Source: Rhodosorus marinus CCMP1338 (taxonomy: Eukaryota > Plantae > Rhodophyta). From it: a stretch of DNA of 64,000 nucleotides. The position numbers and the translations under genes were made by a program. This document shows, piece by piece, positions 1 to 20,000 of the stretch. Each line of letters opens with the position of its first letter. The stretch's first letter is position 1. The notes under the pieces were generated by a model, which saw only the letters and a program-made list of their open reading frames with translations, did not search any database and was not told the origin of the DNA. Where the stretch lies: the NCBI GenBank assembly GCA_029953675.1, contig JAMWBK010000001.1, positions 930,001-994,000 on the forward strand, in the 5' to 3' direction.

Positions 1-816
1 TGAACACGTTAGAAAAAAAAACAAAAAAAAACCAGAAACCTTAGGGTTAACAGCATCCTCAATTTCACCATTGAGAACTTCAGTTACACTTATTGCACCC
101 AATCGCCCTTGTCCACTGTCAGCATCCTTGGCTTGCCTAATCCGCAAGAGATCCAGTTCATATTTTTCAAAATAAACCAACAATATCACGTGGCATGAAA
201 CAACTTGCTTAACACCATATATGACAGTACAACATCAATTTTATTGTCATTATCGATATAAATATATTTTATATTCCATAGATTGAGGTACAAAGGAAAT
301 TTAAGTGTCATATTGCTCGCAGAGCTCGCGTAGAAAATGAGGTGCTTGCTTCCTTTTTTCAAAGATGATTCTAGAACTATCATTACAATCAGCACATAGC
401 ACGTGTCTGAATAGATTAGATTAGCCAAAGAAAGGAGAACCTAAAATAAATCGACCAAGAAGAAATCAATATCGACGATGGATGAGCCAATGATTTATCG
501 TATTTTCGATTCAAATCCAATGAATTTATGTTATGTTGTGATATCCGTTTTTTGTTTTGTTTTTTGGGAGTATAGTCATCATTTTGGCGTCATACGTCCA
601 ATGTTACTTTTTCCGAGGCGTGATTCATGTTTTTTGAATTGTTTTTTAAGCGTGTGAGGGCAATGTTACTTTGGGCCAAAAAAAGGCACGTGGCGTCGTG
701 CCGTAGCATGGCATATGTCAATGGGACATGACGGATAACGAGAGCGCAGCTGCTCGTGGGAGAGCTTATATAAGGGTTTGAGGAAGGAAGTGAGATTTGG
801 GAAAGGTTGGGGCGCG

Positions 817-1416
817 ATGGGAAGAACGTTGAGCATAGAAAGTCGTTCTAGGAGTAGATTTGAAGTTTTGAGGAGCGTTTCAGTATCTGCTTTATTTTTT
901 TTGGTTGTGTGTGCGGGGTTGATGTCTTGGAGAGTGAAGAATTGGTTTGCGAAGGCACCGAATACGGTCAGAGATATGGGAAAGTTTGAGTTGGAGAGGA
1001 CGGAGGCGGAGTGGAAGAAGACCCTCACTGATGAACAGTACTATGTGCTGAGGCAGAAGGGGACGGAGAGAGCCGGAACTGGGAAACTTGACAAGTTCTA
1101 CCCTTCGGAGGGATATTTTAAATGCGCAGCGTGCGAGAACCCGATTTATTCAGCGCAGTCCAAGTTCGACTCCGGCTGTGGTTGGCCAGCATTTGACAAG
1201 CACTACGACGGGTCAATCAAGACCGTGATTGACAACAGCTGGGGAATGAGGAGAATCGAGATCATGTGCTCGAAATGCGGTGGCCACTTGGGTCACGTGT
1301 TCGAGGGTGAAAGGCTGACGAACACAAATGAACGTCATTGCGTGAACTCCATCTCCCTGAAGTACGACAAGGGGAGTGGAACTGACGATCTGAAGGAGAA
1401 GCCTCTCATGAAGTAA
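817..1416 (+). CDS. msrB: Peptide methionine-R-sulfoxide reductase MsrB (zinc type) with N-terminal hydrophobic segment; intronless
   Basis: Motifs LRQKGTERAGTG, CAAC...KFDSGCGWPAF, CSKCGGHLGHVF and RHCVNS. First in-frame ATG is at 817 (the track start at 778 is TTG). TATA-like TTATATAA at 766-773. Confidence 0.95.
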   Translation: MGRTLSIESRSRSRFEVLRSVSVSALFFLVVCAGLMSWRVKNWFAKAPNTVRDMGKFELERTEAEWKKTLTDEQYYVLRQKGTERAGTGKLDKFYPSEGYFKCAACENPIYSAQSKFDSGCGWPAFDKHYDGSIKTVIDNSWGMRRIEIMCSKCGGHLGHVFEGERLTNTNERHCVNSISLKYDKGSGTDDLKEKPLMK

Positions 1417-2593: not shown

Positions 2594-5500
2594 CTATCTT
2601 AACAGTAGCAGAATCTCCAGCTGCAAAGTCCCTTCCCGCGATCGGACGAGGACTTTCACTTCTGACAAGAACTTGATCTGAAGACTGATAGGCTCCTCGA
2701 GTTGGGTAGCCGGTTTTCCGGTCTCGTCTGCGCAGAGCGTCTGGGCGACATCTGCATGGTTGAAGAATCGCGTCGCAAAGTCAGTGGTAGTACGATACTT
2801 GGTCTAAAGAGGGACCCGAACGGGCAGAAAAATAATGTTTCTGATCCTGATTGAACGTGTTCGTCGCTCACCAGCACTATTAGCTGTACCTGCCCGCTTC
2901 CTTCTCCTTCTTCCTTTTCTGGACCTGACGTGGGACCGAGAGACTAGGATTAGTTTCAACATGAATTGGTAAGAAACTTCTGACATTCCTCGCGCACTTC
3001 TGATCAGTAGGAATTTGCTCGGGTTCCTGGAGGTTAAGAGAGAGCCGCACAGTTTTCTGTTTCGGATCTACTTCAGAGGTGCAACCCTGCTCTCTCATCC
3101 TATCAAAAAAGAACTGCCTGTCTGTAGCCAGTGCCGACACATGGACGATTATACATTCGGACGTCACGTCAACAACAACACCATTAAATACCTGAAAGGT
3201 GAAAGCGGGGGAGGGACAAAACTCCCGCCGATTAGGTCTCAAGCTTCCGCGTCAGACTCGAAGCTGCGTGGACGCTCGCTTACTGTCCATTTGGGCCCAA
3301 GATACAAGCAAAGGTACATGAAATCTTCTTCGTCCTCGGCTTGGCCTGCGGCTGTCTTCTTTTCGTTGCAGTTCTTCAATATCTCCTCAATCGAATCTGA
3401 CGATTGTCCCAGAACCGCTGCTCGGACGCCCTCATCACTTTGCAAACTCTCCGTAGGCCCATCACAAACCTCATGGCCAAGTCTTTCAATGGAAAGCTGC
3501 AAGAGTCTGTGAACAAGCACATCAGGGTAGCGACGAATGGGACTGGTGAAATGCGTGTATCTGGTCGAGGTCACAAGAAGGGGAACAGCGAGTGAGCTGA
3601 TCGAATGCAGACCGATCTTTACACCGTTCAAAGCACTGCCTATGTGTCAGTACCTGGGAACCGCAAGGCCGTAGTGATGCCAAGAATCCTCTGGCACTGC
3701 CCCAGTGCAGAAATATTGAGCCTCGAGCATTGGCTTGGTGAAAAGCATGTCCAGTGCTCTGACTTGCTCCTCGGAGCCGATAGTCCCTAGTCGTTCCATA
3801 GATTGCTGGAGTTCTTTGGACGTACTGTATGTGGTGATCCAAAGACGCTCAGATCAGCAACAAGTAGTGACGAGACACGGAGACGGAATATCCTCACCCA
3901 TAGTTGACCTTCTGCTGAAGGCATTGCTCGCAGAGCTTTGCTACCTTCTCGAGCGCCGTGGCACTTGGCGCCGGATGCCTTCGCAGGGTTGCAAAATCAG
4001 GAAAGGTGTCGCTGATGAAGTTCGCCACGCTTGAGTTCGCTAGCAGCATGAATTCTTCCACCAAATGATTCGCAGGGGTTCCACCGAGGACTTGTTCCAT
4101 GCCCGTAGGGTTTCCCTCCGAGTCGAGAATAAACTTCATCTCCGAACGGTGGAAAGTTATGGACCCGTTGTCAAACCGACGCTTTCGTAGGTTTTGAGCA
4201 ATGCCGTGCAGTTGTTGCACGTCGTAAACAACTTCATCAAACTTGAAACCGTTCCCAACATCCAATTCCAGCCCTTCTGGGAGCTCCTGCGGAAATCAAG
4301 CCATTTTTCGATAAGTGTCCCGGCGAGGCAGTGCAAGCGAGACAAACTGGATCACCCGGATCATACCCCAGGCTCTGTGTCGATCATTTCTTGTGCTTGT
4401 TCGTAGCTCAGCTTCGTGCACGAGCGGATGACAGATTTGCCAAACCATGTCTTTCTGACGTTCCCTTTTCTGTCCATTCGCCATCGGACTGAGAAGCTCA
4501 GTCGATCGACTTGCGGGTTTAAACTGCAGAGATCCTCACATAGAGCCCTGGCGCAATGAGATTGTGTAGGTGGTAAGCAGATGAGACTCGACCTCGAGCG
4601 AGTCGTCCGAACGTAAAGCTCGTCAGGTGTTTTAGAACGCGTTTTAGAGCATTTCCTGACGCTTCCATACCTCGGAAGCATTGGAATAACTCGTCTAATC
4701 AAGTAGACCGACGTGGCGCGGTTCCTCGCTTCAAGGTCAACTGCACTATCCGGTTTCACAAAGTGCGAAACGTCCGCGATATGAACTGAAACCTCGAAAA
4801 GATCATCGTCCACTTTGGTGATCGACAACGCATCGTCCAAGTCCCTGGACAGCCATCCCCGTACGTTTCAGATAGAATGTAACCTTTCTTGTGCGGCGTG
4901 AATGGCAACGATACCTCGCCGTCTTTGGATCAATACTAAACACTCGGGTTGCTCGAAAATCATGTCGGCCCTCAAGCTCCTCCTGCACAACATCTGCAAC
5001 TTTAGGCAACGGAGCGGACTTCACGAAGTCCGGGATTTCGTCCTGCACATTATTCGATTGAAGAACAATTCTCCGGCATGTTTCCAAATCCCTCATGTCA
5101 CCTACATATTCACAGTTAACAGTTGGAAGATACATAGTGCGGGGCCACTTAATCACTGTCACCGAGAAAACCTTTCCTTCCAAGCCTTCCTCGACGACTT
5201 TTCTTAATTTCTTCGGGCAATTATCCATGAATATCACAGCGAGCTCGAAGTTTGAGCGCAACCGCCTAAACAGCAGCATCTTCCGTTCTTTCAACAACAA
5301 CAAAAGGGAACAGACCCGCGATTAATCCCATCTTGTTCGATTCCTGTGGGGTATCGTGCATGTTACACAATGGCTAGCGTTTACCTGGAGCCGTTTTCTT
5401 CGATTTCAGCTCGAGGGTCCCGAATATGGCACTCCGATTACTTGCTCCTGAAAGGATGGCCACGACACAACCAGTATCTCTCTTCCGCGCTCTGGATGTC

Positions 5501-6980: not shown

Positions 6981-8660
6981 GTTTCCAGTTATATATCCTC
7001 CTCGTCGAGATTCTCAGGTTCTTAAGTCTCTTCGTTTATGTTCTCTTCAGTTTCCATCCTCCTCAATCCACCTCGTACGGAACACGACTAGATAGCTTCT
7101 CATCAGAGCGGGGGAAAGCTGCTATTGCATCGGCGACTGTTCCACTGGACTGGAATCAGAACATACGTGTAGACAACCAGATTCTGAGTGAATGTATTGA
7201 AAGCTTGAAGGCTGGCGGCTAAGGTTCTGTTTCATCGAACATATGTTCTGTTTCATCGGGAACTATTTCAGCCTCTGGAAGACTGCTTCATCTCAAGTTG
7301 TGAATTCGTCTCACCGAACGCTGGTCGTTGGGTAAGGAATTCTTTATATAGAGAACCATGATTTCAGAGTATTGAAAACTTGAGGCACGGCTATAGCATC
7401 CGCTGCATCGAAGAGTATTAGGGGCAGAGCTAAAGTCAAAGTCCATGTGAACCAATGCGGCTCTCCTTCGTCGCAACGGGCGCTGGTTGGGAGTCGACGA
7501 AGTCTCTGTGAAGAGAACTAGACTGTGACTTCTGAACATTGAAAGCTTGAATCAAGGCTATAGGTTCTGGCGCAGTGAACTCTGGATGTGGGTTGAGGAG
7601 GGTTTCGCAGTGGCTCTTAGAAAGGCAGGTGGTCCTCTTCTTGAGGTCCGGTTAACAAAGTTTGTCAGAACTAGCCCGTGTTTTTGAATGAATTGTGCAC
7701 GTTTCCCTTTTCTACGAAAGATTTTGAATGATCCAGACGCTGGGGCCCGGGGAACTGTTGCTTTGTTCTGGCGTTGTTGAAGTACTGCCGTTTGCTATGG
7801 GAAAATGCAGTAAAAAAACACGCTCCGTCAGAGAAGACCGCAGTTGCTATGCGGGCTCAAGGAGCTTCGATTCATTGTGTATGCGCAGAGATGGAAAATT
7901 ACTTAGTACATTCCGGCTTGTGAGCTCAAGCGAAATTGGACCAGAAGCACCGCCCTTTGACTGCCAAAGCTCTCCTTCAGAACGCCGCATCCAATCAGGA
8001 CGGATTGGCAGACGCCGCACACACAGAATGAAACAGAGCTCAGCCTCACTGACTCTTCCAACGCAGCAATAGGTCAGGAAACCGTCACGCGGCAGTTCTG
8101 CTGCTACTCTAGAAGACGATATCTCCGTCACCATCCAACTCACATCGATTTCATTAATCTGTCCCAATTTAAAGTAGCCATCTCATCACTCAAATACATA
8201 TCATCATCTAAAACTTCAAAAATATATTATTTGTTCTCCGGAAATTTCTACAGAATGAGAAGAGTGGACCCAAAATTCAGTCTACATGCCAAAGCTAGAA
8301 AACTAATAGTGAATATTGTATTATTTTAATCGATAGTATGATGAGAAAAAACATAAAGGTGCAGATAAATTAGAACAGCTCATTTAGGGGCTTCAGGGTT
8401 GTTTAGGGCTCTCATGTGGATGGAAACTTCTTGAGCAAGATGGCTTGGAGGGGATGAGGAGCAGCTTTGGGTATGAATTGATTACTGAAGACTAGAGTTT
8501 CGCACGTTTTGCTGTAATTTAATCCTGAGCATGAACTATGAACAAATATTGAAGGGAAAGGAGAATTTCCTGTTTTGGAGGTCAGCTGTGAGATGTCTTC
8601 TTTGAGGCCGGGTGTTCTGTTGTTGTCTGGATTTGATTTGGTTCGAATTGGAGTTTCTTG

Positions 8661-10210
8661 ATGATGCCTGGAAGCGCCAAAAAGGAGAAAAACGGCGTTC
8701 TGCACCATTTAAGGAAACGAGAACTAGGAGCTGTGGCGAATGAGCTGGACTTCGTGGAAAGCTGTGGAAAGAGATTCGTGCCGATAACGGCTATAATTGA
8801 TCGGGAGTGCAAGATCTTGAGATGCTATTTATTGGGTTTTACAGCGTCAGCGACACATCTTGTGTCCTACATTCGAGAGTACTGCTCTGGATCTGAGGAA
8901 GAAGTAGGAGGTTTTGAGCACAGGTTTATTCTCAAAGCCCAGTTCTGGAACTTTAACGGACCCGATGCTCCGCTCACGCTCTTCAAGGAGACGATTCTCT
9001 TCGACGGACTCAGCTTCGATTGCGACATCCTGAGAGAGGATTTTGGAGAGCTTTCCTACATCGAAAATGAGAGGTCCGGGCTTTGTCTCTTCCACTATGA
9101 GTACGGAGCGAGCTCTTTGGGTTTCAGGGAAACATGTTTCTGCGCGATGACTGTTCCATATAGAATCAGAGGCTCACAACCAAATTCTACTATGATTTTT
9201 GATGTAAGATAGAACCTTTTTTATCGCATTCACTTCGGGGAGTTGCTGTCCAAGTGTTCATTTTATCCGTATAGTCGCCACGCCTGACTCAGACACTCGT
9301 CACTATGCAGGTTTGCGAAGCGAGCGCCCGGCTGAATCTCAATGAGTCCATATTCGAAGATGATAGAGGCTTGACGCTCATCGTAAACACCGGAGCAGCT
9401 TTGAAGATTGTGAACCTGGAGCTGAGAGAAGAATTCGATCAGAGCCGACCAATAGAAACTACTGCGGATGATTCTCTGGACTCGCCATTTCCGTGGTGGA
9501 CGGTTGTACAACCCAGCTCGGAAACCAGGACGACAAGTACGATGTTCACTCCATGATACTTGTTCCTCCACACGCGTTGAGTGTTGAAGCTCAGATTATT
9601 TGCACCCTGAAATGCAGGTACAAGTCCGCATATCGCTACCCAGTACAGCTTTGATATGGAAGTATATATGATGGAGGCATTTCAATCTTCTTTCAAGGGC
9701 CGGATCAACTCGTACGACACCAAAGTGGTTGCGTATCAAGAGAATACAATCAGCATTCTATTCCACGACCTCCAAGAGAGCTCCTCCCGGAGTAAATACT
9801 GCGCGACTGCGAAGGTAAACGCGTCTACTGGGGAGGCAACGGTTGTGAACGGAATGCGTTCTTACGTAGTGCCGGAGCCGGGTATGGTACCAAATATGGC
9901 CAGTGGAGACGAAGGAGTTTCTCCCAGGTTGGTTACAAAGTACTCTCACACATCCGTTTGCCTAATAAGCATTCGTGCTTTTCAAAGGGAATGGAACTGC
10001 CGTTCGCATCTAAGCACCTGCAATATGTCTTTGATCCCGCTCAGGATAAACCTGAATTCTGCAGAAGCTGTACACTACGGAGGCAGACCTAACAACAGGG
10101 CAGGCATCTATCATCTGGATGATAGAGCAGTGAGGGAAGGGAAATCTTTGTCGAGGCTGGACCATCCATTGTCAACGTATGTCATAGTCGGCTATCACGG
10201 TGAAAATTAG
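8661..10210 (+). CDS. DCAF15-like CUL4-DDB1 substrate receptor; 3-4 exons
   Basis: ORFs 8658-9212, 9305-9556 and 9656-10210 join in frame via introns at about 9204-9310 and 9537-9617. Colinear motifs resemble human DCAF15 from N- to C-terminus (see findings). Confidence 0.65.
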
Positions 10211-10684
10211 AGGATCTTCGATAGTGCGTAATCGAGTTCATGTGTATACTCGAGCACAGTACATAACTTGTTCAACGTATTGGACAGCAACCAGTATATA
10301 AAGCTATCAACGAGAAAAGTTCTACTATGGGACAGGGGGAAATGGCACAGAAGATATCCTATTATCTTCTCTTTGGACGAAACGAAGAGAGACTCTCCAA
10401 ACTTCTTACGTCAATAGGACGATACCGTGGTTATGCTGTGTCTATACGACGCACTTTCTTCAGCCTCCAAGAAACCAGAACCCCAGTTCTTGTACAAATC
10501 TGTACTGTGATACTAAGATGTACTGTTGGCTGAGGTTGGTAAGGCTGGTAGCTGTGGATGGTGAAGACGATGACTGGATGAAGGCAAAGGGGCCTTTTAT
10601 CTGTCTACTGCTTTAGTTCGCTCTTGTTATATTTTCTTTTCTGTCGGTGACACAAGAAGAAGACATTTTTTGAGGGCGGAAGAA

Positions 10685-11857
10685 ATGATGGATACGCCGA
10701 CTGATACTATTGAGTCCGTGTCAATTCATCCGTTAGTTCTGGTGAATCTGTCTGATGGCCACACTCGGCTGATTGCAGCTGGGGAAAAGTCTGGTTCTTC
10801 ATCGAAGAGCAGAGCTGGAGTTCGAGCGACGGGAGTTCTCCTCGGGAAGCACGTTCGAAATGTTCTGGAGGTAAATCATAGTTTCGAGTTGAAAGAGAAC
10901 CCGGATGGTAGCTTCGATCGAAACTTTGGAGAAACCAGATTGGGACAGTTTGAGGAGATATTTCCCTCGCTGGAGGTTGTTGGTTGGTATGCTTGCGACG
11001 ATCAATTGAGACAGAGCGATTCACAGAGACATACAGAAATCGTAGAAATGTTCTGCGAGAAACCAGTTTTCCTTCTCTTGGACGCCACAAAAGCGCTGAA
11101 GAATGAGCAATCAAGCACCGGGTATTTCGAGACCATACCGATAACCGTGAACGTAGCAACGAACGTGGATGACTCTGAAAAACTTTCCTTCAAGCAAATC
11201 CCTTACAACTTTCTTTCAACGGACTCTGAAAGAATCGCCGTGGATCACGTTGTGGAACACGCCACATCTTCCGACGAGAACAGTTCAGATATTCGTGAGT
11301 CAAAACCTCGCTACCTACCTCTCTGTCCAGGCTGCTGAATGTCAGATCTTGAAAGGCTAAGGACGAGCATCAGATCGGCTCACAATCGTGTGTTTCAATT
11401 GTGATCGTCTTCCCTCAGTATTACAGCATCTGAAGGCACTCCGACGATCAATAACTATGCTCAAAACGAGGGTGGACGTAATATCATCCTATCTCGAAGC
11501 ATCTCAAAAGGGTGAAATCCCATGGGATGCACGTCTCATGAGAGCAGCCGCGGAGGTACTCGCTGAAGAGAGCATTCCCAGACATGTCCTCAACTCCCAG
11601 TGTTGCTAATACAGAGTGTCCTACAGGTATGCAGGGAACTTCCTAGCATGCAACTCGCCGACTATACCAGAGCTCTAAGTGAAGAAGGAGAAAACGTGAA
11701 GATCGTTTCCTATATGACCGGGGTCACAAAGTCAGTTTGCCATCTTGATGACCTCGTGAAGAAGTTCAAGGCTGCGTACGACGGATCAATGCATGCACCT
11801 AGAAAGGGCACGTTCAGGGGCCCTGCTTTTGCATCAGGATCGCTACGGTTTGTATGA
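10685..11857 (+). CDS. CSN6: COP9 signalosome subunit 6 (non-catalytic MPN domain); 3 exons
   Basis: SIHPLVLVNLSDGHTR, GVLLGKH, EVNHSFEL, FPSLEVVGWY and SERIAVDHV, plus C-terminal helices LRRSITMLKTRVDVISSYL and VCRELP. No JAMM metal motif. Confidence 0.88.
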
Positions 11858-12181
11858 GGAATGAACTCTTTCGGAGGGAGCCTGCGGATCAGAGTATTCA
11901 GATCTCGAAATCAATGGAATCGTCCAGACGGGAACGGAAGGATCGGAAACAAGGGCCCGAAAGAAACCGCAGAAAATCTTTGCAGCAATCGGCTCAATAA
12001 TTCTAGCCGAGAGAAAATCCTCAGTAGCGACCAGCTTGTGTATTACACTGTATAGAAATCTGAGTCCATGCCATAGTTAAAGCGTGTTAGGAATAAGGAT
12101 GACCAAACATAATTGAAAGAGAAAACCAAGTCAAAGATGACTCTGCCCAGAAAAGAATTGATTCTCTTGGCCTGTTTGTAG

Positions 12182-13260
12182 TTATGCTCGCTTCTTGCGG
12201 CGCTTTTGATAGCTTTGTTGACGGATTTTCCGACCGTTCCGGCGTCCGTCAGGGGGACCAGCAGGTGGAACTTCACTTTCCTGCTTTTTTTCTTCGCCGA
12301 AGTCGACGACGCTCTCCCCATTCTTCTTTTCACCCTCGGCATGCTTCTCCGGGACCTGGAGCTTGGCAACAAATAGGTAGGCTGGTTTATCATCGGGGAG
12401 CCTTTCGAAGACACATATCTCCTCGATGAAATTTGGGGTATGCTCAGAATAGAGGAAGTTACCCGTCGAGTCTGTTACTGTGATCCTCCGTTTGTATCTG
12501 AACTTCAATGTCACCTGAAGACAATGATCATGAATCCATCCATTAGAATCCTCACTAAAAGACGCTCCCGGGTTGAATGCACTCCCACCTGGAACGCTAT
12601 TCCATCCTTCGTACGTGTCATCCTATTCTGCACGATCCTATGCCGAGATTGTTCCACCGCCTCCCATTTCACCCTGAGCTTTGATGGTACCTCGCTGAGC
12701 GCTGCGACCATCTGCTGATGGGTCTGTTTCGTCACGAGCCTAGAAAGGCTTTCATGATCTTTCAACGAGTAACCCTTGCTAATCTTCATATAACTTTTGA
12801 ATAGTTCATCAGGGCTCGCTGGGTCAATAGTCCATGCCCTCAGCAAGCTCCATCGGGTCTTAAAATATCCGTTGAACCTTTCCCACCATGCTCTGCGAAT
12901 CCCTGAGCAGTCGTGGGAAAAGCATTGCAGCCATGCTGAAGTAAGCCTAAATGAAGTTTCGCACATAACAGCGGGCACTACTAGCGCGAATTTATCTTAC
13001 CAACAGGATAGGGATCAACAATTTTAAGTTCCTTCGCAGTTGGAGCGGTTGCTCTACAGTCGCGCAAACAGGAGAAGAAAAAAACGATTCAGTACGGCGT
13101 CTAGCCGCAAGATCGAAATTCTACTCCAGCACCGGGCGAAAAGCACAGTTGGATAGACTTAGACTTACAGTCCGCGAAAACTAACGGATCGCTCCAGTTC
13201 CCGGGGAACAACCGTGCTGAAGCGTTGCACCACTCGACGACTTCCGATCAAACCCGCCAT
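12182..13260 (-). CDS. Tim44-like domain protein, mitochondrial ribosomal protein mL45/Mba1 family; spliced
   Basis: FKSYMKISKGY...VKWEAVE...FQ|...TLKFRYKRRITVTDSTGNFLY...FIEEICVFER resembles the mL45/Tim44 fold. Putative first exon MAGLIGSRRVVQRFSTVVSPG (ATG at 13260) looks like a mitochondrial presequence. Confidence 0.72.
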
Positions 13261-13599
13261 CGTTCGAGGGATGTTATTGGCTATGACTCCGTTTCATTAA
13301 GAAAACCCTTAGATTATCCAGGAAAAGTCAGTACGAGAACTTTATCCAGTCTCCATAGTCCAGATGAAATGCGACAAAGCAGGCCCTACCAACACGCCCC
13401 ACCCCGAACCCCCACTGCTCCGAAAACAATTCTCAGATCAAAGAACTGCACCGAGCCGCAATGGGACAGCTTGTCCTGGAAACGAATGGACAAGCTGTCC
13501 TGAAGCAGACAGCTTGTCTCATTTTTGGTTCCCGCCAAGAACGCAGGTTAGTGCTTTTTATTGGTCAATACAATATTGAAAAAAGAATAAATATTATGA

Positions 13600-13607
13600 G
13601 CGGGAAA
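13600..13607 (-). promoter_or_regulatory. Candidate E2F site (TTTCCCGC) in the AT-rich promoter of DNA polymerase epsilon
   Basis: GCGGGAAA on the + strand, about 410 bp upstream of the POLE ATG. It matches the E2F consensus exactly, but an 8-mer can occur by chance. Confidence 0.4.
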
Positions 13608-14013
13608 TGATATGCTCAATATATTTCTACAAATAGAATATTCTCAAAGTCGAAACAGATGTAAAAACGTCCGGTGCTTATGGCATTAATCTGATTTTCT
13701 TCAATTTTGATGTACTTCCGGGGTCTTCTTTTGGGGGTATTTTCTGGGGCCAAGAGATCGGGGGGAAAACGAGGCCATTGTTTTCTTGAGATTTTTTGTT
13801 CGGTCGGTTGGGCGTTGGAAGGTGATAGTGGCTGATGTTACATGTGTTTTTCTTTTTTCGAAAGGATTTTGTTGTCCAAATGGAGTTGTTGGGGATAAGG
13901 ACTTGCACTGAGATGAAGTACTTGACAATGGACTGTTGCGGACCGGGTTGGAGGGAGGAGGGGAGGAGAATTGAGGGGTTTTCGGTTGTGTTTGAAGGTG
14001 GCTAGGCGAGAAA

Positions 14014-17000
14014 ATGGGTTTCAGCGGAAGAGGAAACGGATTCCGCGGCGGTTGGAGGGGGGTACGACGTGGAGGAGGTCGAGGACGAGGACGAGGACGA
14101 GGATATGGCTTCAAATCAAGCAGGAGGTTGGCACAGCCGAGCTGGGGCTCTGACGAGCCAGCGCAGACTGCAAACGCTGACCCGGAAATCTCGACAACCG
14201 AGAGAAAGACGCTTGACAGGAGAAAAGACATGGGTGAGCGAGATGGAATGCAGGTTCTTGGAAACTCCTCTCTTTCTACGCTTTTCTGAATGTATGTGTT
14301 TTCGCTTGGAAAGATTTCCGAGATTCAAATAGCGGAGTTGAAGCGCTGTCCACCGGATCGAAACCGCGTTTGGGATGGTTGTATAATATGGCGTCGGTGA
14401 CGGTTCTGGATTCCATCTCCGAAAAACTTGTTCAGGTAGCTACTAGCAAACCCGAAACCAGAATTCTGCAAGCATCGCTAAGTCTTGATTATTGTAAATA
14501 GGGAGCGGATTTGTTCTTTATTGGTTCGGATGGAGTAGACTTCAGAGCTACTGCAGTGATGCGACCCTACCTCTACCTCTCCGCGCTTGAGGACAAAGTG
14601 GGGGATCTGGAGACTTCTCTTCTCAAGCTGTACCCTGAACTGGTGCGGGAAGCTGAAGCGAATTTTTCCTTTGGATTCTGAGTACGAACTGATGAAATGC
14701 TTGACAACTGACTACCTTTCTGTGATAGATCGCTTGCTGTACAGTGACATACCTGGAAGACCTTGATGCTCCAAACCACTTATCAATGAGGGTTAGCAAC
14801 CTGGACCATCCGCAGCTGACCCTACTTCTGGCTTATTAGTTTTCGATCGTTTCTTGAATTCTGCAGGAAGGAAGATCCTACTTGAAAGTGGAGAGTTGGA
14901 CTATGAAAGAAACCAACGACCTCAGGCAAATGTTGTTACCTTTCCAACGTAAAAATCAAGCGAACAAGAAGAAACTCGGCGTTGCAGACGCTGCTGAGCT
15001 TGAGTATAGAGCTGGTCTAGATCTTCTGGATGATATTAGGGAATACGACGTGTCCCCATTGAACCGGATTGCAATTGACATGAATCTAAGGGCAGGTCAC
15101 TGGTACAGAGTTGATCCGGATGGAATGTCAGGTGTGTTCGTGCACCTTCGCACGAGCTGCTTGCCACGACCGTGTTTTAACCAAAACTGTCGGTTACAAA
15201 CTTCAAACCAGGAGCGAGCACGGATGTCACCGACAGTGAGGGCCAACAAGAGAAGAAGGCCGAGTACAGATCTGTGCATCTGGAACGAGTGGAAGAAATC
15301 CTGGAAAGAGCTACACCAACAGTGCTCGCGTACGATATTGAGTGTACTAAGCAGCCTCTTCGTTTTCCTGATGCTGACGAAGGGGATATGGTACAGTCCT
15401 CATTCAGCCAAGCGCGTTTCTCGGGTTGTTCGAGCTGACCACTGTCCTGTAATTGCAGGTGATGATGATTTCGTGGATGATTGACGGGCACGGCTTCCTT
15501 GGTGTCAACCGCGAGGTTGTTTCCGCTGATATAGTGGCTTTCTCGTATACGCCAAAGCCCGAGGTATGTTGCTTGTCAACAAGACATTGACGTGGTTTTC
15601 CAGGTCTCTAATTTCGATTTGACTCGCATTTGGTGAATCTAATAATTGCAGTTTCCCGGCGACTTCGTTATTTTCAACGAACCCGATGAGAAGGCCCTTC
15701 TCGAGCGCTTCTTTGAACAATACAGAGCAAACCGACCGAGAGTGGTCGTTACGTACAACGGCGATAACTTTGACTTTCCGTTCATTGAAAAAAGGGCCGA
15801 AGCTAACGGCCTTGACATGTACAACGAGATTGGTTTTAAGCAAACTTCTCAAATGCAGAGCGTAGAGTATCGATCGAGGACTGCCGTTCATCTTGACTGC
15901 CTCTATTGGGTGAACAGAGACTCCTACCTCCCGCAGGGCTCAAGAGGCCTAAAAGCTGTTACGAAAGCGTTGTTAGGATATGATCCATTAGAACTTGACC
16001 CCGAGGAAATGACTCCAGCTGCGAAATCTAGACCACATCTACTGGCTTCGTACTCTGTATCTGATGCTGTGTGCACGTACTACTTGTACATGAAATATGT
16101 ACACCCGTTCGTATTCTCGCTCTGCACGATTCTGCCCCTGAATCCGGACGACGTGCTACGCAAAGGCTCCGGAACCCTCTGCGAGCTTCTGCTAATGAGT
16201 GAAGCAAAGAAAAAGTTGATCGTTGCGCCGAACAAGCACGAAGACTATTCCGTTAAACACACACCAGATGGGCATATGCTCGAAAACGAGACCTACATTG
16301 GAGGACACGTTGAAGCGCTTCAGTCCGGCATTTTTCGTAGTGATATCCCGAGTAAGATTCTTACAGTATCGGTAGGCAAAAGACGGGCTACTGATGTGCT
16401 GTTTTTTTTTCACCACTCCAACCCTACAGTGAAATTCCGCATTGACACAACGGCAATTGAAGAACTTGAAAAGAAGATTGATTCGGTTTTGAAATTTGCA
16501 GTCGAAGCTGAGGCAAAGAAAACCCTCGAAGAGATTATAAACTATGAGGAACTAAAGGTAGGCTATATGCAAGCTGACTTCGGATTGTTCTGCACTCTGA
16601 CAAAACTGGCGCTTGTTTCTTTGTTTGCGTAGGAGAACATCTTAAATCAGCTCGCGGAACTTAAGAAGAATACATGCTTGACGGAGAATCCTCTTATTTA
16701 TCATCTTGATGTAGGGGCAATGTATCCTAACATTATATTGACTAACCGGCTTCAACCGCACGCTATTGTTGATAGCACAACATGTGCAGCATGCGACTTC
16801 AACGGTGACTCAGATTGTCAGAGGTACATGAAGTGGACGTGGCGCGGGGAACACTACACAGCCTCGCGTGGGGAGGTTGAGATGCTGAAACGATCTGGGC
16901 CAGGTCCTGTGGTGGAAGACATTTCAGACCCTTCGTTCATGAAAAGGTTGAAAGACTACTCAAGGAAGAATTATCGGAGAATTACTGACACTCGAATTCA

Positions 17001-20000
17001 GGAGCGTGTTGCAACTGTCTGCCAACGAGAGAACTCGTTTTACGTGGACACAGTCCGTGCGTTTCGAGACAGAAGGTACGACCTTAAGCAGATGTTAAAG
17101 CGATGGAAGAAAAAGGTGCGAGAAGCAAGGGAGAGAGGTGATGAAGCTCAGATTTTGGAGGCCGAGAGTATGATTGTGCTTTATGACAGTTTGCAGCTCG
17201 CACACAAGTGCATCCTCAATTCCTTCTATGGGTACGTGATGCGGCGAGGTGCAAGGTGGTATTCAATGGAAATGGCAGGCGTTGTAACACAGACGGGATC
17301 CCACATTATTCGAGGCGCTCGGCAGTTCATTGAACGCATTGGTGTGCCACTCGAACTGGATACTGATGGAATCTGGTGCACGCTGCCGAAGTCGTTCCCC
17401 GAGAACTTCGTCTTCAAAACGAAGGAAGGGCAAACGCATCAAATGAGCTTCATCTGCTCAGTATTCAACCAGGAGGTCCACCAGAACTTCAGCAACCACC
17501 AATACCAATATCTAAACAACAAGCAGGCGCCGTCTTCCTACGAGGTATCAACGGAATGCTCGATTTTCTTCGAAGTCGATGGGCCTTACAAGGCGATGAT
17601 CCTTCCAGCATCAAAGGAGGAGAATAAACAGCTAAAAAAGCGATATGCAGTTTTCAACGATGCCGGAAAACTCGTCGAGCTAAAAGGCTTTGAAATAAAG
17701 AGAAGGGGGGAGCTGAAACTTGTTAAGGTCTTCCAAGGCGACGTTTTCAATAAGTTCTTGGACGGCAGTTCCTTGGAGGAGTGCTACGATGCGGTGGCCT
17801 CAGTTGCTAATAGATACTTGGATGTCCTGGAGGAGGAAGGGAATATGTACGACGACGAATCCCTGATCGCTCTGCTCATGGAGCAAAACAATATGAGCAG
17901 GAGTTTGGCAGAGTACATAACGGACGGACAAAAGAGCTTAGCAATTACAACCGCAAAGAGATTGGCGGAACTGCTTGGCGAGCAGGTGGTTAGGGACAAG
18001 CTGACTTGCAAGTACATAGTCTGCAAGAAACCCGAGGGTGTTCAGGTGAGAAAAAACTTTTGAAAGATTCTCAGAGCCGCGTTTGGTTTTATGGCCCTAA
18101 GCGTCTGTCCTTTTCTTCTATTATTTGTTCAGGTTACCGAGAGGGCCATACCAATTCAAGTTTTCGGCACTGATGCAAAGATTAGAAAAGAGTTCCTCCG
18201 TCGCTGGACAAAGGAAACGGAGGATTCCGCTTTAGAACTGCGAGCTCTGATTGACTGGGAGTACTATGCGGGTCGGCTTGTCTCCTCGATACAGAAAATT
18301 ATTTGCATCCCCGCCGCTCTGCAAGAGGTAATACTCGCAAACTTGCAGGAGTCATTGCGAATACCTCCCACATGGGCTAGTTCTGAGATTCGAGACTTCC
18401 TGCAACGTTTTTTTTCCGTCAGCTGTCTAATCCAGTTCCGAGAATAGACCTTCCGGACTGGCTCGCGAAGAAGGTCGCTGAGATGAGAGATCCACGGAAG
18501 CAGAAATCCATTTCCTCCTTTCTCGTGCAGAAATCGACATTCGACGAATTTGATGATGTCAAGCATCTACCGAACAAGAGTAGCCGAGCATGTCCCGACA
18601 TGGAGGACATTACGAATCGTGCTAAGTCCACTGACAAGATAGCCAAGGCGAGACTGAAAACTGAAATTTCTGCTTCGCGTGGACACGGCCTGGCCGGTAA
18701 GTGAAAGGATTTCGTGCTTGCCATGCTTGCACCGCGAGGAGCTGGCTGTCCAATTTTTAACCACAGTGCTCAAATCCGCAGATGAGAATGAGCAGCCAGA
18801 TCTGAAGGATGGCTACGTATCATGGCTTAGAAGAATGAGACGAAAATGGAAACTGAGTAGGAAAAAGAAGGAGTTGGAAAAGCTGAAGAAAAAACGCTCA
18901 ACAATCGAGAGCGATGATGATGACGACGTCTCTGGGGGCAAGAATATGCTGAGTCGACGGCGAAGAGCTAGGGGTATTGGAAACTATTTCGAAGAACACA
19001 ATACGCGGCCAAGAGTGAGCTTGCTGAAGAACACGTGGGAGGTATTTTCGCTCGTGAAAACGAAGGGTAGAGGCAGGTATCAACTCTGGATACGCCCACT
19101 CTCATCACGTAAGGAAAGCAGGAAGCGTTGTAAGATCTTATCAAGACTTACAAAGGTCTGACTGTGCTAAACTTTTAGGCTTCGATGACGGCCCATCCGA
19201 GTTTTATGCAATCCCGTTGAGAGTCCCTCGCTCCGTGTACGTGAACTCACGACTGCCAAAGGATGAGCACCTTGGAAAGGAAGTAAAAGGTTATGTCCTT
19301 CCTAGAGGTCAGCACAGGTAAGCGTCTTAAAAGGAAGTCTATTAAAGCCAGGGTTTCTCAAGGTTGACTGTGCTCAAATATGTCAACTTCGCGCCTTGCG
19401 CAGCTTGCACCTGTACAGGGTTGGGGTAGATGAAGCTCATGAAGGTATGAGTACTGGCGGTCAGGTATCGAGCGAAGGCACGGACATTGAAGGAGTATAT
19501 GAAACAAAAACTCCCGAGGATTTCAACGCGCTTCTTCGGGTTGGCTGCCTGTGCAAGCCTAAAAACTTGCCTCAAGGGGGGAGGAGTGCCCTTCTCAGCA
19601 GGGGACTATGTATTGACGACCTGGAACCCGTCGACGTTCGAAGTCGCTCCCAGTACTTGGCACAAGGAGAGGACAAGGTTACTGCCTTCCTCTATGTGGC
19701 GGACTCTATGGACGGCTCTCAACGTTTGCTTTTTGGACTCCTTACGCCGTTGATAGAACAGGGCCTTGTAGTGAGTGTGTCACAGTCTCACAAGTCCCCC
19801 CCTTTGGATGCCGCAAGGATTTGGAAATCCATTGGGTCTGAGAAGGACGCCAACTTTTCCAATGAGTTTCAGTTCACTGTAGCAAACGAGCGGTCAGTGA
19901 AAGCGGCTGGAAAACTGGTTCATCAGCGACTTGAAGATTTGCTGATGGATGGTCGCTTCGCGAGGAGGACCATTCTCTGCGTGCAGAGCTCAATTGGATA

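Follow-up and report, generated by a model that had tools for sequence, protein, structure and literature searches.

We analysed a 64,000-nucleotide (nt) stretch of nuclear DNA from the red alga Rhodosorus marinus CCMP1338 (contig JAMWBK010000001.1, positions 930,001 to 994,000; hereafter, the window). A four-exon gene on its forward strand, NDN08_005280, at 8661-10210, encodes a protein of 413 or 414 residues that, along most or all of its length, is very probably a homologue of animal DCAF15. DCAF15 (DDB1- and CUL4-associated factor 15) recognises substrates for the CUL4-DDB1 ubiquitin ligase, of which it is a subunit, and it is relevant to drug discovery because it mediates the action of indisulam and E7820. 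To our knowledge, little is understood of its natural function and substrates, and nearly all of its characterisation comes from animals. We found no papers that link DCAF15 with algae in the literature that we searched. An initial annotation, which was made from the sequence of the window, had proposed a DCAF15-like protein, and DCAF15 is favoured by all of our searches (Pfam, PDB sequences, hhalign, and Foldseek).

The region 8661-10210 is a real, expressed four-exon gene (Table 1). Its spliced product is an exact match to GenBank KAJ8908575.1 (P0001, 413 residues), which GenBank names "hypothetical protein", as the initial annotation had expected of standard pipelines. The junctions are identical in P0002 (414 residues, 85% identity), the product of a fully spliced MMETSP transcript of another strain, and splicing is backed at the cDNA level because of the transcript products P0002, P0067, P0005, P0069, and P0003. 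The initial annotation had joined three open reading frames (ORFs), which are connected by two GT..AG introns with compatible phases. The joining was right, and the junctions in P0002 match it, but a third intron inside ORF 3 was missed: the gene has four exons rather than three, and its product is 413-414 rather than 453 residues long. Because intron 3 is in frame and free of stop codons, it reads through as an ORF, and the translation equals P0001 only after it is removed. Thus, the 453-residue version is the form that retains intron 3. Exon 1 has tandem ATGs at 8661 and 8664; the GenBank start is at 8664, and the transcripts P0002 and P0067 share the start site of exon 1. Intron 1 is missing from P0001, P0002, and P0067. 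Intron 3 is absent from P0002 and is retained in P0067 and P0005, which are isoforms from a further strain, and intron 2 is retained in the isoforms P0069 and P0003 (further strain). The MMETSP transcriptomes, then, include retained-intron isoforms for introns 2 and 3. In the window strain, retention of intron 3 would lengthen the protein by 39 residues and would not truncate it (117 nt is a multiple of three); the retained intron 3 in another strain (P0067, P0005) contains a stop.

The sole plausible Pfam match of P0001 is to DCAF15_WD40 (PF14939), the profile that the initial annotation had named. The match covers residues 36-118 and scores 18.6 bits (E = 0.0017), but the gathering cut-off of this family is 23.9 bits. 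The Rhodosorus proteins score from 18.6 to 21.4 bits, and three protist relatives pass the cut-off: P0004 with 36.2 bits, P0007 with 34.9 bits, and P0066 with 36.3 bits. When 1.84 billion representative proteins were searched exhaustively with the profile, there were 5 matches, 3 of which are real relatives besides the window protein (P0004, P0007, and one Rhodosorus fragment); another, P0006, was rejected as repeat junk. P0004 is full-length (435 residues, from an MMETSP culture transcript / JGI 3300016877), and it matches the Rhodosorus profile with E = 7e-59 and 35% identity. P0007 matches the same profile with E = 3e-13, and P0066 is a longer member of its 90% cluster, from a Logan assembly. 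P0004 has the same order of conserved blocks as the Rhodosorus protein, and both share a conserved C-terminal tail (LSRLxHPLSxYVIxGYHG). At the same time, P0004 and P0007/P0066 are nearer to the animal consensus than the Rhodosorus protein is (for example, YQVYDPVPGALPNF in P0004 versus YQVVYPFPTFQPAF in human DCAF15). By their sequences, P0004, P0007, and P0066 act as bridges from the Rhodosorus protein to the animal DCAF15 family. Word-indexed searches for homologues, with the protein or with the algal profile, found Rhodosorus sequences and P0004 only. Scanning metagenome contigs with the algal profile gave 415 pattern matches, of which 0 were confirmed, and isolated middle segments of the protein had no Pfam match. 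We view a weak Pfam match to Pox_TAP (E = 0.06-0.1) and a PDB match to a trypsin inhibitor (E = 1.3) as noise.

Comparison of the algal profile with the PDB (177,635 sequences) placed human DCAF15 in the top four positions (E = 1.1e-3 to 1.8e-3), and the next match had E = 1.2. In the alignment, algal residues 4-117 lie opposite human residues 29-134. When P0004 alone was compared with the PDB, a second colinear stretch appeared (..LLLNTGASL with ..VLLNTSYSL), which by itself was not significant. With human DCAF15 29-134 as the query, a homology search yielded nothing but vertebrate fragments of exon size, without a full-length DCAF15 among them, so we turned to the exons of a fish DCAF15 locus (L001). 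Translations of these exons were used as PDB queries, and the human sequence was read from the resulting alignments (N-terminal domain, 28-261; C-terminal domain, about 409-600). The locus (ENA ERZ26222911 contig, about 8270-14650) holds a complete fish-like DCAF15 gene that adjoins a KH-domain (FUBP-like) gene, so it is host DNA in a metagenome assembly. Searching its six-frame ORFs with the algal profile ranked DCAF15 exon ORFs 1st, 5th, and 9th of 899, which is too weak to use (E = 0.2-7).

Against the human N-terminal domain, the algal profile for residues 1-125 scored 26.7 bits, and the best of 3000 shuffles scored 11.3 bits. Alignment of the algal family to human plus fish DCAF15 with hhalign, under relaxed settings, gave 357 colinear columns (Prob 88.7%, E = 2.5e-6, query 4-379). 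With default settings and a richer algal alignment, hhalign aligned query 5-278 to template 2-296 (Prob 82.6%, E = 9.6e-6), in an unbroken path that starts in the helix-loop-helix, crosses the N-terminal domain and the linker, and reaches the first helix of the C-terminal domain. (End-to-end alignments from hhalign -glob were meaningless and were discarded.) Overall identity to human DCAF15 is about 21% (69/335 aligned positions).

The initial annotation had listed pairs of similar motifs, each with a string from the window protein and one from human DCAF15. The human strings are all genuine, as each was recovered from PDB chains of DCAF15, and the pairs differ in how well they hold up. The N-terminal ones (VLHHLRKRELG, ITAIID...LLGFTASATHLVSY, and FWNFN) lie in the region with 26.7 bits, which 0/3000 shuffles reached, and the corresponding hhalign segment has P = 1.3e-8. 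The pairing of LIVNTGAAL with VLLNTSYSL, where the N-terminal domain ends, also stands: the segment that aligns IFDV..LIVNTGAAL to YQVVYPFP..VLLNTSYSL has P = 0.0016-0.0055, and its score was reached in 0-1 of 200 column shuffles. This includes LTLIVNTGAALKIV of exon 2, which is paired with human VVLLNTSYSLVAC, and a block across the exon 1/2 junction (about residues 174-212) that has P = 0.0016, with 0/200 shuffles as high. The pairing of FDMEVYMMEAF with LDFEYVINEVI, in the first C-terminal helix, received weak support (QYSFDMEVYMMEAF with QLTLDFEYVINEVI, P = 0.04, 3/200 shuffles as high); for the start of the C-terminal domain, comparison of a hidden Markov model (HMM) with the fish C-terminal domain gave E = 0.0095. 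VNASTG and WDLNTG do fall in the aligned neighbourhood, but their pairing is ambiguous, and the tail pair (REGKSLSRL..YVIV with HKGCSLKVL..TWIV) has no statistical support by itself. For comparison, segments that were deliberately mismatched gave P = 0.26-0.7. These sequence comparisons establish homology to DCAF15 for the N-terminal two thirds of the protein. For the last ~130 residues, the similarity is weak by sequence, and homology is suggested mainly by a low-confidence structural model.

Our reference for the parts of the protein is human/vertebrate DCAF15 (PDB 6Q0R, 6PAI, 6SJ7, 6UD7, 6UE5, and 8ROX; Pfam PF14939). In the human protein, an N-terminal domain (30-264) and a C-terminal domain (383-600) interweave and form five beta-sheets, and residues 272-385 are disordered (10.1101/737510; 10.1101/738534); the ordered parts are roughly 32-271, 386-397, and 417-600 (10.1101/737510). 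Residues 35-59 form a helix-loop-helix that docks in the cleft between BPA and BPC of DDB1 (defined in 10.1101/737510). The algal protein has 413 residues, versus 600 in human DCAF15, and lacks the disordered residues 1-31 and most of the 272-385 linker. As its own linker has about 40 residues, the 413 residues correspond to the ordered core of human DCAF15, which they match in size. It also carries an extra GYHGEN tail. The order of the conserved blocks is the same throughout. Within the core these are (I/V)xD, LGF(S/T)....(L/V)SY, (F/W)W(N/E)FN, and LF; next come (Y/F)(Q/D)V...LxxNT...L, where the N-terminal domain ends, and, where the C-terminal domain opens, an LPF/PFP block and the helix (L/F)D(F/M)E(Y/V). 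In the linker, the block ADDSLDSPFPWWTVV is colinear with human LEDDKISLPFVVTDL (about 408-422, before the C-terminal core); it was not in the initial list of motifs, and its counterpart in P0004 is NPLPWWTT. The C-terminal tail in exon 4 (..GKSLSRLDHPLSTYVIVGYHGEN) is conserved within the algal family, and its relation to the human C-terminus is covered only by the full-length Foldseek alignment described below.

At the sequence level, a helix-loop-helix of the DDB1-docking type is present, with the same hydrophobic pattern as in human DCAF15. Profile alignments (HMM and hhalign) pair V12/L13/L16/F30/V31/C34 with human V36/L37/L40/L53/F54/L57, and a basic pair, K36-R37, lies at the position of human R60. 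AlphaFold2, given 3 or 5 related sequences, placed helices at 11-17 and 27-33 (with low confidence), followed by a long run of beta-strands and a helix at 269-278. This predicted secondary structure fits the published topology of DCAF15. (Vertebrate fragments were left out of the AlphaFold2 alignment, as their intron-derived ends scatter across it.) When the 5-sequence model was compared with 350,542 PDB chains by Foldseek, DCAF15 chains ranked first to third (6pai_C, 6ue5_A, and 6ud7_A; E = 1.3e-8 to 1.4e-7), with 399-404 aligned columns that span nearly the whole length of both proteins. With the 3-sequence model, DCAF15 again came first (E = 1.4e-3).

We propose that the alga has kept the three structured parts of DCAF15: the N-terminal helix-loop-helix, the N-terminal beta-sheet domain (about residues 38-218), and the C-terminal domain (about 256-413). 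Where human DCAF15 has a disordered region of ~115 residues, the alga has a linker of ~40. By analogy with human DCAF15, the helix-loop-helix would enter DDB1 between its BPA and BPC propellers; the beta-sheets of the N- and C-terminal domains would interweave to form a clamp; and the clamp would present a substrate to CUL4-RBX1 for ubiquitination. To judge from its sequence, then, the protein is a putative DDB1 binder and a putative substrate receptor of the cullin-RING ligase CRL4. In this presumed job, and in binding DDB1 by an N-terminal helical motif, it would resemble DDB2, CSA, and other canonical WD40 DCAFs (DWD/WDxR). It does not appear to have WD40 repeats or the WDxR motif, as there was no Pfam WD40 match (E up to 10); DCAF15, too, is no canonical propeller (10.1101/738534).

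Several observations weigh against this proposal. Both AlphaFold2 models have low confidence (mean pLDDT, predicted local distance difference test, of 31.5 and 38.9). The template modelling score (TM-score) to DCAF15 was 0.35-0.39 for the 5-sequence model and 0.19-0.39 across both models. Part of the Foldseek score is the same amino-acid similarity that the sequence tests measure. Given the low quality of the models and this amino-acid term, we consider the Foldseek result to be supportive and not decisive. In the helix-loop-helix, the alga has D29/E32 in place of the human arginine ladder R52/R55. The window protein scores under Pfam's gathering threshold, and the algal family is small, with only 3 real relatives in 1.84 billion proteins. 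Finally, the C-terminal sequence evidence is weak: P = 0.04 for one block of 21 columns, and nothing for the tail.

The one serious rival explanation builds on this last point. Only the helix-loop-helix and the N-terminal domain (about residues 1-220) might be shared with DCAF15, and the C-terminal half might be an unrelated or independently evolved beta-rich domain. The protein would then carry the N domain of DCAF15 but would not be a full-length DCAF15. Consistent with this, the C-terminal region alone reaches only P of about 0.04, p is about 0.06 when the human C-terminal domain is compared with the algal C-terminal HMM, a profile of the tail alone (residues 378-413) matched neither the human nor the fish C-terminal domain, and no Pfam family matches the C-terminal part. 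Yet the single C-terminal block with support sits at the colinear position, the default hhalign path is unbroken from 5 to 278 and so reaches into the C-terminal domain, Foldseek aligns about 400 columns, and the length of the protein equals that of the human ordered core. Also, because the two domains of DCAF15 share beta-sheets (10.1101/738534), it is structurally unlikely that the N-terminal one would stand alone. We therefore think that homology confined to the N-terminal part is unlikely, and we prefer homology to DCAF15 over most or all of the protein.

A second rival explanation is that the similarity arose by chance and that this is a lineage-specific beta-rich protein with an unrelated function. 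The protein is only about 21% identical to human DCAF15, the window protein is under the Pfam threshold, and UniProt names this exact protein (A0AAV8V242) 'Beta-galactosidase'. This seems very improbable because no shuffle (0/3000) reached the N-terminal score, because the relatives are 11-12 bits above the Pfam cut-off, and because searches of four independent kinds all put DCAF15 on top. The sequence scores exclude chance similarity in the N-terminal two thirds. As for the UniProt name, no glycosidase family was matched in Pfam, so it looks like a mis-annotation.

The least probable explanation, which we regard as barely credible, is that this is an orthologue of DET1 or a DET1-like DDB1-DDA1 adaptor: DET1 is known from plants, docks to DDB1 via a helix-loop-helix (PMC11864197), and was the fourth Foldseek match of the 5-sequence model (9ltz_R, E = 3.6e-3), but this E value is 5 orders of magnitude worse than that of DCAF15 (with a TM-score of 0.26), no member of the algal family had a Pfam Det1 match at E up to 10, and searches of PDB sequences, to the same E limit, brought up no DET1 chain. 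The initial annotation had named DET1 as the outcome that would speak against DCAF15, and DET1 is not favoured. In the complex with DDB1 and DDA1 (PDB 9LTZ), DET1 resembles DCAF15 in being a mostly beta-sheet partner of DDB1 that contacts DDA1 (PMC11864197). It was the first Foldseek match that is not DCAF15 and stood above ordinary WD40 propellers. The models thus hint that DCAF15 and DET1, both of which are DDB1 partners that contact DDA1, may share related folds.

The residues of the pocket that binds aryl-sulfonamides are not conserved. Human T230/Q232/A234/F235 correspond to R187/N189/N191/E192 in the alga, so we do not expect aryl-sulfonamide glue activity (i.e., recruitment of RBM39 as with indisulam). 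This agrees with a published comparison of DCAF15 sequences, among which conservation of the pocket is only weak (10.1101/738534). Comparison with the alga confirms that the drug pocket is not ancestral.

The algal protein is, then, a very divergent member of the known DCAF15 family in an unexpected lineage. The initial annotation had suggested that it would extend the range of the family. The extension is real, but modest, because the family was already known and because P0004 already carries an automatic, precomputed assignment to PF14939, so that presence outside of animals was already detectable automatically. A compact homologue in a red alga implies that the fold, and the predicted DDB1-docking motif, are old. 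It is possible, although we lean slightly towards doubt, that DCAF15 is an ancient CRL4 substrate receptor that predates the split of the animal and red-algal lineages, and that red algae keep a minimal form without the long linker for a conserved endogenous substrate. If so, surfaces that are common to the alga and human would indicate the natural degron site. More generally, such a distant sequence should help to map the surfaces that are truly conserved, as candidates for the site of the natural substrate. Two database records also need correction: "hypothetical protein" in GenBank and "Beta-galactosidase" in UniProt.

Table 1. Coordinates in the window of the gene, of parts of its predicted protein, and of neighbouring genes
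Feature	Position	Strand	Remarks
ORF 1	8658-9212	+	
ORF 2	9305-9556	+	
ORF 3	9656-10210	+	
Exon 1	8661-9203	+	Residues 1-180 of P0001: helix-loop-helix and most of the N-terminal domain
Intron 1	9204-9310	+	107 nt, GTAAGA..CAG, phase 0
Exon 2	9311-9536	+	Residues 181-256: end of the N-terminal domain, then the short linker
Intron 2	9537-9617	+	81 nt, GTACGA..CAG, phase 1
Exon 3	9618-9927	+	Residues 256-359; the C-terminal domain begins here
Intron 3	9928-10044	+	117 nt, GTTGGT..CAG, in frame, without a stop; inside ORF 3
Exon 4	10045-10210	+	Residues 360-413 and the TAG stop at 10208-10210
Predicted DDB1-docking helix-loop-helix, KNGVLHHLRKRELGAVANELDFVESCGKR	8688-8774	+	Residues ~9-37; similar to human DCAF15 33-60
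N-terminal domain core, best conserved	8775-9017	+	Residues 38-118; FVPITAIIDRE..LLGFTASATHLVSY..FWNFNGP..LF
Linker block, ADDSLDSPFPWWTVV	9401-9445	+	Residues 232-246
C-terminal-domain helix, QYSFDMEVYMMEAFQ	9623-9685	+	Exon 3; similar to human QLTLDFEYVINEVIR
Methionine sulfoxide reductase B (SelR domain)	778-1416	+	Ordinary housekeeping neighbour
RNB-domain exoribonuclease, intron-split	4361-5303	-	Ordinary housekeeping neighbour
COP9 signalosome subunit 6 (CSN6)	10670-11609	+	Next gene downstream
DNA polymerase epsilon catalytic subunit	15646-18063	+	Ordinary housekeeping neighbour

The next gene downstream, about 460 nt past the stop codon, encodes CSN6. It has the Pfam domains JAB and MitMem_reg, and its best match in the PDB is human CSN6 (6r7f_F, E = 7e-17). 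This places a cullin-RING ligase regulator beside a putative CRL4 receptor in the same orientation, which is probably a coincidence.

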